Of a stretch of 64,000 bases of DNA, positions 22,593-42,706 are shown piece by piece. Numbering within the stretch: the stretch's first letter is position 1; every line of letters begins with the position of its first letter. The notes beneath the pieces were generated by a model, which saw nothing but the letters and a program-made list of their open reading frames with translations, was not told the DNA's origin and ran no database searches. A program made the translations under genes and the position numbers. Location: contig NC_043004.1 of NCBI RefSeq assembly GCF_006345805.1, positions 92,628,001-92,692,000 on the forward strand, read 5' to 3'. Origin of the DNA: Octopus sinensis. Lineage: Eukaryota.

Positions 22593-22654
22593 ATGTCTGT
22601 GGAAGACAATGCAGTAATTTTACAGAAATTAATGGAAAGGTTTACAATGTACAG
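22593..22654 (+). CDS. Putative first coding exon of EGF-CFC gene ([21 protein letters not shown]; start may be ATG 22593 or ATG 22632)
   Basis: Open frame from ATG 22593 and in-frame ATG 22632, ending at a strong donor CAG|GTAAGA in phase 2. This joins exactly to the phase-2 exon at 41640 (AG+A=Arg). Supported by splice-phase logic, not by homology. Confidence 0.55.
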
Positions 22655-23508
22655 GTAAGAATATTTCCTCTTTTACAAACATATTCTTTTACATTTTACC
22701 TTGCTATCTGATGACACCTCTTGATTGTTTACATTCTAGTAATAAAAAAAACTAAACACAAAAATTGAATGTTTTGCGTGTGTGTGTGTGTGTGTGTGTG
22801 TGTGTGTGTGTGTGCCATAAAACCTGTCGAGCACACAATTTATTGTAGATGTGACTCACCTATTACGGTGAGACGGAGATAAATGAGATGAAGTTTTTAC
22901 TTCTTATCTCAAACAGATATAACAGAAATATTTCAAACTCGATTGAACTGTAGACAGCAATTTATAATTTAACAAATATACATAACATGTGCGGAGATGT
23001 GCTGTGCATATATGTGTGAATAGATATTTCTTAATACATCTTTCTCTCCCTCCCCCCTCCCCCCTCTCTCTCTCTCTCTCTCTCTCTCTCTCTCGCTCTT
23101 GTTCTCTTGTGTCTATTTCTGAATATATATATATATATATGTATATATATATCTATATATATATATATATAATAATATAATATATATATATATATATATA
23201 TATAATGTATATATTATATATATCTATATATATCTATATTTAAAAATATACACAGATATCTGTATATATGGTACATAAAGTATATGTACATGCGCATATG
23301 CATATTTATACACCCACATACATACGTACATACATAAATGTGGTACGTATGTTGTTTTAATGTATGTGTGTGGTTTGTGTCAGTATACGTGTACATGTGT
23401 ATTATAAATAATATATATAGATGTGGGTAGTATGTATATATACATATGTATATATGTATTATATATATATGTATATATATATATATATATATATATGATA
23501 TCTATATA

Positions 23509-23906
23509 TACTCTTTTACTCTTTTACTTGTTTCAGTCATTTGACTGCGGCCATGCTGAAGCACCGCCTTTAGTCGAGCAACTCGACCCCGGGGCTTATT
23601 CTTTGTAAGCCCAGTACTTATTCTATCCGTCTCTTTTGCCGAACTGCTAAGTAACGGGGACGTAAACACACCAGCATCGGTTGTCAAGCAATGCTAGTGG
23701 GACAAACACAGACACACAAACACACACATACATATATACATATACATATATACGACAGGCTTCTTTCAGTTTCCGTCTACCAAATCCACTCACAAGGCAT
23801 TGGTCGGCCCGGGGCTATAGCAGAGGACACTTGCTCAAGATGCCACGCAGTGGGACTGAACCCGGAACCATGTGGCTGGTTAGCAAGCTACTTACCACAC
23901 AGCCAC
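23509..23906 (-). mobile_element. Group A tRNA-derived SINE, near full length
   Basis: Near-identical reverse complement of 27900-28304. Confidence 0.92.
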
Positions 23907-24041
23907 ATTTTGCGGGCGTATGTATGAGTGTGTAACCATCTATTCTTATTGATATTTTCATGTGAATATGAGCTAAATGCAGTAAGCTAGAAATATAAAC
24001 TCAGTAAAATGGGTTACTCTCGTAGAAAGCAGTATTTCGAA

Positions 24042-24457
24042 GGCGGTGAGCTGGCAGAAACGTTAGCACGCAGGGCGAAATGCTTAGCGGTATTTCGTCT
24101 GCCGCTACGTTCTGAGTTCAAATTCCGCCGAGGTCGACTTTGCCTTTCATCTTTTCGGGGTCGATTAAATAAGTACCAATTACGCACTAGGGTCGTTATA
24201 ATCGACTTAATCCGTTTGTCTGTCCTTGTTTGTCCTCTCTGTGTTGAGCCCCTTGTGAGTAGTAAAGAAATAGATATTTCGTCTACTGCTACGTTCTGAG
24301 TTCATATTCCGCCGCGGTCGACTTTACCTTTCATCCTTTCGGGATCGATTAAATAAGTACCAGTTACGCACTGGGGTCGATATAATCGACTTAATCCGTT
24401 TGTCTGTCTTTGTTTGTCCCCTCTGTGTGTAGCCCGTTGTGTGCTGTAAAGAAATAA
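24042..24457 (+). mobile_element. Group B SINE with duplicated ~180-bp body
   Basis: ggcggtgagctggcagaaacgttagc head followed by two copies of the ctacgttctgagttca...taaagaaatag unit. Confidence 0.88.
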
Positions 24458-24689
24458 GAAAGCAGTGTTTCGATTCAGAGTTAAAATACTTCTTTTATTT
24501 CCTTTCGCCTCTGACCTTTGTTTAATTGTTAAGTCTGTTGCTAACTTTTAATCGCAATCTCATCTTTATATTGCTGGAAATCTCACACAATAGAACAGAA
24601 GACTGAGTCTTCAGCAACAAACCAGATCTTTGATTTTGTCGGAGGTGTATTTTTAATGGGTTTACAGTTAACATTATCGTTTATCATTT

Positions 24690-25380
24690 ACTTGCTTTGG
24701 TCACTGGATTGCGGCCATGAATGAGTTTATTCAAACTAATCGACCGCATTACTCTTTTCTTTTAAAGTTTGGTACTTATAATCAGGGTCTTTTGGGCCGA
24801 ACCACTAAGTTACAGGAACGTAAAAAAAATCAACACTGGTTGTCAAGCGGTGGCGGGACAAACACAACCCCATACATACATATACATACATATATAGATA
24901 TAAATATGTATCTTTTATCCTTCACTTCTTTCAGTCGTCAGTCTGCGGTCATGCTGGGGCACCGCCCTGGAGAATTTTTAGTCGAATGTTTCGACCCCAC
25001 TACTTATTTTTTTTTTAGCGTGGAATTTATTCTATCGGTCTATTTTCCCGAACCTCTAAATTAAGCACGGGTTATCAAGAGGTGTGGGGGAGGACAAACA
25101 CAGATACAAAGACACACATATAGATACATATATACGACGGGCTTCTTTCAGTTTCTGTCTACCAAATCCATTCACAAGGCTTTGGTCGGCCCGAGGCTAT
25201 AGTAGAAGACATTTGCCCAAGGTGTCGTATATACGTTCGATCGGTTTCTTTCAGTTTCCGTCTATCAAATCCACTCGCAAGGCTTTGGTCGGCTCGAGGC
25301 TATAGTAGAAGACACTTGCCCAAGGTATCGTATATACGTGCGATCGGTTTCTTTCAGTTTCCGTCTACCCACTCCACTCA
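24690..25380 (-). mobile_element. Composite group A SINE fragments, including a 103-bp tandem triplication
   Basis: ttctttcagtttc(c/t)gtct recurs at 25143, 25246 and 25349. Confidence 0.75.
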
Positions 25381-25669
25381 GATGAGTGATTAACTTACGA
25401 GTAGTAGTTAATTCAAAACTTATAGATCTCTGGAAACATTGTCCATCGCGTTAACTTATATAAATCCGGAAGTTTACTAGAGATATAGAAAAAACAGATT
25501 AGACAAAATATTTTCTACATTTTCTCTCCGAAAAATAAAAGCAAGAAACACTTTCAAATATTTCAAATGTCAAATAATTCTTTGTAAAAGAAGAATAAAT
25601 TCTAATATACTGAAATATTTTCAATTTTAGTGTTTACAAGTTAATAATGGTTACAAATTTTGATACAAG

Positions 25670-25860
25670 GCCAGTAATTTTAAGGGAAACAGAAAGTCGA
25701 TTACATCGACTCCATTGTCCAACTGATATTTATTTTATCGATCCTAAAGATGGAAAGGCAAAGCTGAGCTTGGCGGAATTTGGATCCAGAACATAAAGAG
25801 CCTGACGAAAAGCGTCAAAGCACTTTGTCCGACTCACTGACCATTTTATCAGCTTGCCTC
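25670..25860 (-). mobile_element. Diverged group B SINE
   Basis: tttatcgatcctaaagatggaaaggcaaagctgagcttggcggaatttg segment. Confidence 0.6.
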
Positions 25861-40625: not shown

Positions 40626-40634
40626 GTTGTTGTT

Positions 40635-41207
40635 GTTTTCTTTCTTCAAATTTTCTTCCATTTCTCGCCGAGTGTTTTCCTTAAACCTAGGGCAGACAAG
40701 CTCATTTTATGCATTCCCAGATTACACACGCAAATTCACAGGTAAAATATATATTTAAAAAATTAATAAATAAATAAATTCATGAATGGATGTTGTTTTC
40801 ACAGCGATAATGCTCTTCTCAGTACATGAGTCGTTCCAGTTAACACGATTTTTTGCACTTCCTGTAGGTATCATTTTCAAATAGGTTTCAGTATCTTTTT
40901 TTATCATTCCTAGAGATCATACAATCACTGGTACTGTAGTCGCCTTGAGATGCAACATTTTTTCAATTTCTATTAGCAAGTCTTTATATTTATTGATCTT
41001 GTCAAATTATTTCGTCGCTATATTGTGATCGCAAGGAATACTCATGTCAATTAATAAACACACCTTTTTTGTCTGATCTTTTATAATAATATCCGGTTTA
41101 TTAGCTTTTATAGTTTTGTCGGTATGTACGGGGAAGTCCCATAGAATCGCTTTCTCCCTCAGTCACATCTTCTGGATGGTGTTTATACCATTTATCAGCA
41201 GTTTTGA
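40635..41207 (-). mobile_element. 5'-truncated Dong/R4 LINE
   Basis: KTADKWYKHHPE..ILWDFPVHTDKTIKANKPDIIIKD..CLLIDMSIPCD..KINKYKDL. TAA-type tracts on both sides. Confidence 0.85.
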
Positions 41208-41351
41208 TTATTATTATTATTATTATTATTATTATTATTATTATTATTATTATTATTATCATCATCATCATCATCATCATCATCATCATCATCATCATCA
41301 TTATTATTATTATTATTATTATTATTATTATTATTATTATTATTATTGATA

Positions 41352-41590
41352 GGGTGGTGTGGATTGGCAAGAGCGTCAGAGCATTGAACAAAAATTTTAA
41401 GCAGTTTTTCTTCTGACTTTTCAATTCTGAGTTCAAATCCTTCTGTAGTCAAATTTCGCCTTTCATCTCCCAATGGCCGATAAAACAAAGTTCTGCAGAG
41501 TAGCTGGTATCGACTAGCCAGCATCACCCACTCCATACACCACCACTACAACTCATAAAATTGTTAGTCTTGTGTCTAAATTAGAAACAA
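41352..41590 (+). mobile_element. Diverged group B SINE just upstream of exon 2
   Basis: ttctgagttcaaatcc..gtcaaatttcgcctttcatc segment. Confidence 0.55.
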
Positions 41591-41639
41591 GTTGTAGTAG
41601 ATGAAACATTTTACTTGTTTTAATATAACTTTATTTTAG

Positions 41640-41695
41640 ATACATGCTGCTTGTTTGGACGTTATTGTGCGGAAAATCCATTATCGTTGCTAACG
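41640..41695 (+). CDS. EGF-CFC exon 2, signal-peptide core ([19 protein letters not shown])
   Basis: Acceptor ttttattttag| and donor ACG|GTGAGT. 56 nt, phase 2 in and phase 1 out, hydrophobic stretch. Joins in frame to the EGF exon at 42628. Confidence 0.78.
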
Positions 41696-42627
41696 GTGAG
41701 TACCCTTGTTTGGTTAACACCTTATATTTTATGATTTTGTTTTGCTGAAAATCGGTTTTGTCTTTTCAGATTACATGTTAAGTATTTTTGGTTTAATTCA
41801 ATGATAATCTATATTGGCTAATTGCAAAATTGCAGCTCCTTTGTTTAACCAGTTCAGTTATAGGGAAAAAAACCAATTTGTTGAAGCTCTCTCTTTCTCT
41901 TTTCTTCATGTGTGTGTGTGTGTATGTGTGTGTGTGTGCGCGCGCGCGCGTGTGTGTGTGTGTATAGAAATATATGCATGTATATATGGATGTGGATGCA
42001 TGTATGTATGTATGCATATATGTATGCATATATGTATGCATACATAAAGATATATAATATCCATATGTGTGTGTGTGTACATTATACACACACACATGCG
42101 TCTTTGTCTTTCTTTCATAATATGTTACATACATATATATATATATATTATATATATATATATTATATATATATATATATATATATATATATATATATTT
42201 ATACTTTTATATATATATATATATTATATATACATATATATATATATTATATATATATATATATATATATATTATATATATATATATATAATATATATAC
42301 ATATATATATATTATATATATATATATATATATATATAGTATATATATATATATTATATATACATATATATATTATATATACATACACACGCTCTGTGTC
42401 TATCGTTTTCTCTGTCAATCTATTATGAAGCAGTTATCTTACTTTACTTTCCATCTCTTTCACTTGCTTCCCTTTCTCTCTCTCTCTCCCTCTCTCTCTC
42501 TCTCTCGATATCATATATGTGTATGTGCTTGTATGAACGTGTTTGTGTACGTATGCATGTGCATACGTGAGTGTGTACATGTGTATATGTATAAAGCATT
42601 GTATTTAATCAAAACATCTACTTTCAG

Positions 42628-42706
42628 GTGAAAATAATTTGAAAACTACACAATGTTGTCAAAATGGAGGAACGTGCATTCTTGGAAGCTTTTGTGTCTG
42701 TCTTCA
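42628..42706 (+). CDS. TDGF1/CFC1-like: EGF-CFC (Cripto/Cryptic/oep-like) exon 3, N-terminal part of the variant EGF domain ([25 protein letters not shown])
   Basis: Acceptor ctttcag| and donor CA|[22 protein letters not shown] matches the EGF-CFC signature (human Cripto CCLNGGTCMLGSFCAC), including the adjacent CC and the C-x-x-G-G-T-C O-fucosylation motif. Confidence 0.88.

Follow-up and report, generated by a model that had tools for sequence, protein, structure and literature searches.

Does a 64,000-nucleotide (nt) stretch of Octopus sinensis DNA (RefSeq assembly GCF_006345805.1, contig NC_043004.1, positions 92,628,001 to 92,692,000; hereafter the window) hold a gene of the EGF-CFC family, to which the vertebrate Nodal co-receptors Cripto, Cryptic and one-eyed pinhead (oep) belong? 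This family was long held to be restricted to deuterostomes. In 2022, Truchado-Garcia et al. described EGF-CFC genes in gastropods, annelids and brachiopods, with cephalopods outside both the sample and the text (PMC9907556). An earlier reading of the window from its letters alone (the sequence-only reading) had proposed that three micro-exons, hidden in repeat DNA between 22593 and 42706, encode a signal peptide and the variant EGF domain of such a gene. Our analysis makes it near certain that these micro-exons are coding exons 1–3 of LOC118764629, and that this cephalopod locus is orthologous to the EGF-CFC genes (Cripto, Cryptic and one-eyed pinhead; Cfo-EGF_CFC in the snail Crepidula). The gene has five exons spread over 52.8 kb and a 504-nt open reading frame (ORF), giving a product of 167 amino acids (aa).

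Direct reading of the three stretches, together with scripted splicing, reproduced all three micro-exons, their canonical GT-AG sites, the phases 2 and then 1, and the peptide (Table 1). The annotated O. sinensis protein XP_036361489.1 (LOC118764629, P0009, 167 aa) is spliced at precisely these three junctions. When all GT-AG combinations able to yield the public protein were searched exhaustively, each species gave a single solution. The exons are absent from the ORF list because they are only 23–79 coding bases long. The repeat setting was also described correctly, the introns being full of microsatellites such as (ATT)270 at 39813–40610, which lies in intron 1 and ends 1 kb before exon 2. 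A regular-expression scan from 42706 to 64000 found neither a CFC-like exon nor the remainder of the EGF domain, because exons 4 and 5 sit 5.5 and 11.2 kb past the window end. They were placed on the O. sinensis locus of CM016866.1 (GCA_006345805.1; L003 in Table 1), which is the same DNA as the window (exact 78-nt match, constant offset 12631). Exon 4 also fixes the last residue of the peptide, previously given as Q or H: its first A completes the trailing CA of exon 3 to CAA, and the residue is Q.

Table 1. Features of the O. sinensis EGF-CFC locus and of its surroundings; positions refer to the window unless marked otherwise
Feature	Position	Strand	Length (nt)	Remarks
Upstream ATG + 13 codons	22593-22631	+		most likely 5' untranslated region (UTR)
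Coding exon 1	22632-22654	+	23	MERFTMY + 2 nt of R8; signal-peptide n-region; donor GTAAG; phase 2
Intron 1	22655-41639	+	18,985	many microsatellites, decayed retroelement pieces
Coding exon 2	41640-41695	+	56	signal-peptide hydrophobic core and c-region; acceptor TTTTAG, donor GTGAGT; end phase 1
Intron 2	41696-42627	+	932	mainly (AT)n and (GT)n-type repeats
Coding exon 3	42628-42706	+	79	trailing CA; first two-thirds of EGF-like domain; acceptor TTTCAG, donor GTAAGT; end phase 2
Intron 3	from 42707; first 21.3 kb in window, to 64000	+	26,781	
Exon 4	L003 56857-57005 = window-equivalent 69488-69636 (outside window)		149	EGF remainder and whole CFC domain
Exon 5	L003 62562-62758 = window-equivalent 75193-75389 (outside window)		197	linker, hydrophobic tail, stop
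Retroelement-like ORF fragment	9900-11614	+		upstream of gene; RVT_1 at 9900-10235, sub-threshold 18.3 bits
Retroelement-like ORF fragment	26913-27323	-		in intron
Retroelement-like ORF fragment	37404-37916	+		in intron
Retroelement-like ORF fragment	62497-62976	-		in intron

To what extent was the gene already on record? A protein search with the peptide, padded so that full-length proteins could qualify, gave one match, a 167-aa O. vulgaris 'hypothetical predicted protein' with a Pfam CFC domain. The 90%-identity cluster of this protein also includes XP_036361489.1, XP_014773847.1 (O. bimaculoides LOC106871742) and a 53-aa O. bimaculoides fragment, and orthologous models of 167 aa are present in both O. 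vulgaris and O. bimaculoides. The fragment (P0010, UniProt A0A0L8HAY5, from an older O. bimaculoides annotation) is labeled 'EB domain-containing protein'. It consists of exons 1–3 read through into intron 3 (CAG TAA) and is a truncated model of the same EGF-CFC gene. The description of the gene as hidden therefore holds for the ORF list, which has no entry for it, and fails for the databases, where the gene already stands as three nameless NCBI models in three Octopus species, one of them tagged with the CFC Pfam domain in UniProt. Our literature search found no paper on a cephalopod EGF-CFC gene and no relevant link of Cripto with octopus. What is new is an unreported, nameless addition to an established family rather than a novel type of gene.

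Family assignment was decided by the full protein. Against PDB and Pfam, the exon 1–3 peptide alone gave weak generic EGF matches (hEGF at 17.7 bits, below the cut-off; Notch and factor VII EGF at E>1) that left the family undecided. With the full protein, Pfam PF09443 (CFC) scored 30.8 bits against a gathering score of 23.2 (E 2.7e-7, residues 69–100), and the top PDB match was the CFC domain of Cripto (TDGF; 2j5h, E 1.1e-6), with the alignment CG..HGTWL..KC.LC.C..G...CL. A full HMMER pass over 1.84 billion representatives yielded 248 relatives at E<=1e-3, and all significant single-domain relatives were EGF-CFC proteins. The named ones comprise 'EGF-CFC [Crepidula fornicata]', 'teratocarcinoma-derived growth factor' (Crassostrea, Bulinus), 'cryptic protein-like' (Mytilus), an amphioxus TDGF1-like protein and many vertebrate Cryptic proteins; unnamed proteins came from Lottia, Haliotis, Patella, Nucella, Argopecten, Solemya, Mactra, Dreissena, Capitella, Ridgeia and Lingula. 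Three long multi-EGF matches (P0011, P0012, P0026) were set aside as generic EGF repeats with neither the CC motif nor a CFC domain.

Residue by residue, the octopus EGF domain fits the family pattern CCxNGGxCxLGSFCxC...FxGRxCE with its adjacent CC pair. Every residue invariant in an alignment of 120 sequences is present (C36, C37, G41, C43, F48, C49, C51, G57, C60, H74, W77, C82, C85 and C87), although these sequences were partly picked by motif, which overstates invariance for some columns. In human numbering, G87, T88 and F94 serve ligand binding and H120 and W123 serve ALK4 binding (PMC9907556). Their octopus counterparts, G41, T42 and F48 for the ligand and H74 and W77 for the receptor, are all present; exon 3 encodes the CC pair and the three ligand residues.

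Gene structure supports orthology to the EGF-CFC family independently of sequence relatives. Orthology was rested on it because the tree leaves the position of Octopus among spiralians unresolved. In this maximum-likelihood tree (36 sequences, 174 columns), the Octopus clade fell, at weak support (87/77), on the branch that separates the chordates (97/89*) from the other spiralians; mollusc monophyly was not recovered, and the position of Octopus relative to other spiralians was not settled. The tree is compatible with orthology and with a spiralian position. Coding exon lengths are 23/56/79/149/197 nt in Octopus, 23/59/93/79/149/197 in Lottia, 23/41/73/149/245 in Crassostrea, 23/50/117/91/134/203 in Branchiostoma and 23/59/165/115/107/122 in Scyliorhinus. 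The 23-nt first coding exon was found in all six EGF-CFC genes mapped, from three phyla, and all follow the phase pattern 2,1,(1),2,1 (2,1,2,1 in Octopus). A symmetric (phase 1-1) spacer exon at the intron 2 position is present in Lottia, amphioxus and shark and absent in Octopus and oyster. Octopus, Lottia and oyster have in common a mollusc-specific intron that interrupts the EGF domain two residues past CxC, whereas the equivalent phase-2 intron lies 12 nt later in amphioxus and, in shark, 36–42 nt later, between EGF and CFC. As a signature, the first exon of 23 nt combined with the series of phases can help to find EGF-CFC genes that gene callers have missed in large-intron genomes.

Two observations on exon sizes accompany this comparison. 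The last three coding exons of Octopus match those of the limpet Lottia in length (79/149/197 nt), although the two proteins are about 33% identical and the genes differ more than 10-fold in size. The phase-2 intron keeps its phase at three positions, with a two-exon length sum of 222–228 nt; intron sliding is a possible explanation.

Constraint on the sequence was examined within Octopus. The 504-nt ORF is intact and the exon lengths are equal in the three Octopus species. O. sinensis and O. vulgaris differ at 2 of 504 coding positions, compared with about 4.5% in the surrounding DNA. Between O. sinensis and O. bimaculoides, exons are 95–99% identical and most flanks (introns) 80–94%. The latter pair shows 17 coding differences, and all 11 of 11 replacements fall outside residues 35–103; within this EGF-CFC core there are 3 silent and no replacement changes. 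Small as the numbers are, this distribution points to probable purifying selection on the two domains.

These results bear on two other accounts of the locus. The protein could come from another EGF family, whether Notch/Delta-like, WIF1-like or EB-domain, and resemble EGF-CFC through the common CxNGGxC motif alone, as the weak generic matches of the exon 1–3 peptide and the UniProt name of the 53-aa fragment would suggest. This account is refuted, its remaining chance being negligible, by the CFC domain of the full protein with its match to 2j5h, by significant single-domain relatives that are all EGF-CFC, and by a gene structure common to EGF-CFC genes. The same three lines uphold the sequence-only call of an EGF-CFC gene, for which a missing CFC domain or another EGF family had been named as the adverse outcome. 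Alternatively, the gene could be decaying or unexpressed and the public models ab initio artefacts across very long introns. The two longest introns, of 19 and 27 kb, are filled with repeats, and the older O. bimaculoides annotation has just a 53-aa exon 1–3 fragment; both points lend this account some color. Yet the intact ORF with equal exon lengths in three species, the conservation of exons beyond their flanking introns, and a domain core free of replacements all speak against it. Intron phases also agree with those of orthologues from other phyla, an agreement that no artefact would produce. We consider decay or artefact very improbable.

Translation of this EGF-CFC gene starts downstream of the position first proposed. 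The sequence-only reading opened the protein at 22593; the real start is the ATG at 22632, 39 nt downstream. The 22593 start was rejected because a 1-nt indel, GACAATGCAG in the window versus GACAATTGCAG, shifts the upstream ATG out of the main reading frame in both O. vulgaris and O. bimaculoides, because all three public models (O. sinensis, O. vulgaris, O. bimaculoides) begin MERFTMYR at 22632, and because this start gives the conserved 23-nt first coding exon. The 13-residue extension would thus most likely be untranslated 5' UTR. An ATG inside exon 2 was also considered as a start and is needless, since the 23-nt exon 1 is conserved. The upstream ATG is in frame with the main ORF solely in the O. 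sinensis assembly (L001 and L002 compared at about 9960–10000). In the other two species it begins an ORF in another frame, which runs across the real start and, by reading, would stop inside exon 2. The indel reflects either a conserved overlapping upstream ORF or an assembly error in a short T run.

The protein encoded from 22632 has the layout of its family. A basic n-region (MERFTMYR) precedes a hydrophobic stretch (Kyte–Doolittle hydropathy >1.6, peak at residues 9–25) and then VANG, which suggests a cleavable signal peptide of about residues 1–27, likely cut after VANG (VANG|E). Eight residues separate it from the variant EGF-like domain (C36–C60), which is followed by the CFC domain (C69–C102) and by an acidic/Pro-rich linker ending in a hydrophobic tail. 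This tail (residues 148–164) follows small residues (AANTSS), resembles the tail of most relatives, and fits a predicted glycosylphosphatidylinositol (GPI) attachment signal. An AlphaFold2 (AF2) model places helices at 4–21 and 148–166, with a core pLDDT (predicted local distance difference test) of 84–89; helices and hydropathy together would be consistent with the signal peptide and GPI-type tail described for the family (PMC9907556). A Foldseek comparison of the model with PDB gave no match at E<=1e-3, returning just small EGF, VWC/TIL and pacifastin-like knots. The spacer of about 8 aa, described from the outset as much shorter than in vertebrate Cripto, exists because the phase 1-1 spacer exon is absent. 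Leu was likewise read correctly as the residue after CxC, but it is not unusual there: Solemya also has Leu, and K and P occur in molluscs too.

Known EGF-CFC proteins place these features in context. Molluscan members (Cfo-EGF_CFC of Crepidula fornicata, Lottia LOTGIDRAFT_233075, Crassostrea gigas, Mytilus) have the same signal peptide, CC-type EGF, CFC domain and hydrophobic tail at 30–48% identity to the octopus protein, while octopus introns are about 10 times longer (52.8-kb gene versus about 4 kb). Vertebrate Cryptic/CFC1, Cripto/TDGF1 and zebrafish one-eyed pinhead share all of G, T, F, H and W with octopus, besides the 23-nt first exon and the phases. They differ from it in a long N-terminal spacer exon, in Pro after CxC, and in the intron between EGF and CFC described above for shark. 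The amphioxus TDGF1-like protein (Branchiostoma belcheri XP_019642182.1) has the Thr (CCENGGTC), about 36% identity over residues 29–159 and the same phases; unlike octopus, it has a 117-nt spacer exon and the shifted EGF intron. Co-receptor function has been shown in vertebrates only.

What can the octopus protein do? The question turns on one threonine. All three Octopus proteins read CCQNGGTC, with Thr at position 42, and the O-fucose consensus C2-X4-T-C3 is present as C37-QNGG-T42-C43, as the sequence-only reading had seen in its CxxGGTC motif. C-X4-T-C is the O-fucosylation consensus of POFUT1 substrates, and such substrates are also the nearest EGF domains of solved structure. Over its full 16 residues, the ligand-face motif is letter for letter that of Latimeria, Callorhinchus, shark and marsupial Cryptic. 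At the Thr position, 131 motif-bearing representatives carry T (102), L (11), I (9), R (3), V (3) and M (3). Among the named spiralians recovered, Thr occurs otherwise in one Dreissena copy only, its near-identical partner having Lys and the rest, other molluscs included, having L, R, I or V.

This distribution meets a published model. Truchado-Garcia et al. reported the key Thr from deuterostomes only and found other residues in the snails, annelids and brachiopods of their sample; on this ground they argued for an origin of the Thr, and of the coupling to Nodal, inside the deuterostomes (PMC9907556). An L56T change enabled Crepidula EGF-CFC to rescue zebrafish oep; the native protein, the sole spiralian one tested, was reported to have no role in left-right asymmetry or Nodal regulation (PMC9907556). 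Because octopus has Thr, and because the Leu-to-Thr swap sufficed for this rescue, the octopus protein is predicted to be natively competent for Nodal-facilitating activity.

The overall best explanation, to which we give moderately better than even chances, is an EGF-CFC orthologue that would act as a GPI-anchored, Nodal-facilitating co-receptor. By analogy with the family, the protein would be secreted and displayed through a GPI anchor on the outer leaflet. Its EGF-like face (G41, T42, F48), with T42 presumably O-fucosylated, would bind a Nodal/Vg1-type TGF-beta ligand, and its CFC face (H74, W77) would bind an ALK4-type type I receptor; ligand and receptor would thereby be assembled together. 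For in vivo Nodal co-receptor function in octopus taken by itself, the chances appear near even or slightly above. The co-receptor label of the sequence-only reading is accordingly split: family membership stands, and the function named is that of vertebrate members, which for octopus may apply by analogy.

The principal competitor is a true EGF-CFC orthologue with a Nodal-independent role, in gastrulation, axial morphogenesis or other Cripto-type signaling, in which the Thr is neutral or a convergent one-codon change. It draws on the Crepidula result, on a position that varies freely in spiralians (L, R, I, V, K, T), on the Thr and Lys of the near-identical Dreissena copies, and on an ACG codon that is one nucleotide from Met, Arg and Lys codons. 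Spiral cleavage has also been lost in cephalopods (PMC5104510). Conversely, it is the whole 16-residue ligand face, beyond the Thr alone, that matches vertebrate Cryptic, and this motif is unchanged in three Octopus species while its flanks differ. We regard a Nodal-independent role as a substantial possibility, with roughly one chance in three. Several further points weigh against the co-receptor explanation. We know of no report of Nodal-dependent asymmetry in cephalopods, which counts for a Nodal-independent role, and the literature searched said nothing about Nodal in cephalopods. The HMMER relatives included no orthologue from squid, cuttlefish or nautilus. The overall ratio of replacement to silent substitution rates (dN/dS) between octopus species is about 0.4–0.5, from only 15–17 substitutions, and the putative signal-peptide and GPI assignments come from hydropathy alone. 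The result reported for Crepidula, the only spiralian tested, also counts against it.

A stronger version of the co-receptor explanation takes the Thr-bearing, vertebrate-identical ligand face as the ancestral bilaterian state, with octopus keeping a working Nodal/EGF-CFC partnership. We rate it unlikely, and the tree is silent on whether the Thr is ancestral or convergent. If true, the coupling would be older than the protostome-deuterostome split, with repeated loss in gastropods, most bivalves, annelids and brachiopods, the reverse of the model in which Thr was gained in deuterostomes (PMC9907556).

Herein, the EGF-CFC family is extended to cephalopods, and three RefSeq/GenBank 'uncharacterized' or 'hypothetical' proteins can now receive names. 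The native octopus Thr bears on whether Nodal/EGF-CFC coupling is ancestral to Bilateria; it cuts against the published generalization and makes that model directly testable (PMC9907556).

The window as a whole has a G+C content of 34%. Besides the retroelement-like fragments (Table 1), its repeats include an (AT)132 microsatellite at 42129–42385 in intron 2. Pfam searches of its larger ORFs gave only the sub-threshold reverse-transcriptase fragment, and no second cellular gene was seen in the window. Three observations concern relatives of the octopus gene in other species. The two near-identical EGF-CFC copies of Dreissena polymorpha (P0031, P0167), located on different scaffolds, differ at the critical position, one having Thr and the other Lys; the residue can therefore flip quickly in spiralians. 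In Patella caerulea, at least six near-identical EGF-CFC genes (P0025, P0193–P0197) carry consecutive locus tags and share a 44-Mb scaffold. They form a tandem expansion, which agrees with the mention of multiple Patella paralogues in PMC9907556. A 674-bp contig (ENA ERZ23877643, L008; P0024) encodes part of an EGF-CFC protein that has the Thr, reads as in Octopus over a 22-residue stretch and is 48% identical to the octopus protein. It has no introns and probably derives from the transcript of an invertebrate not yet sampled.

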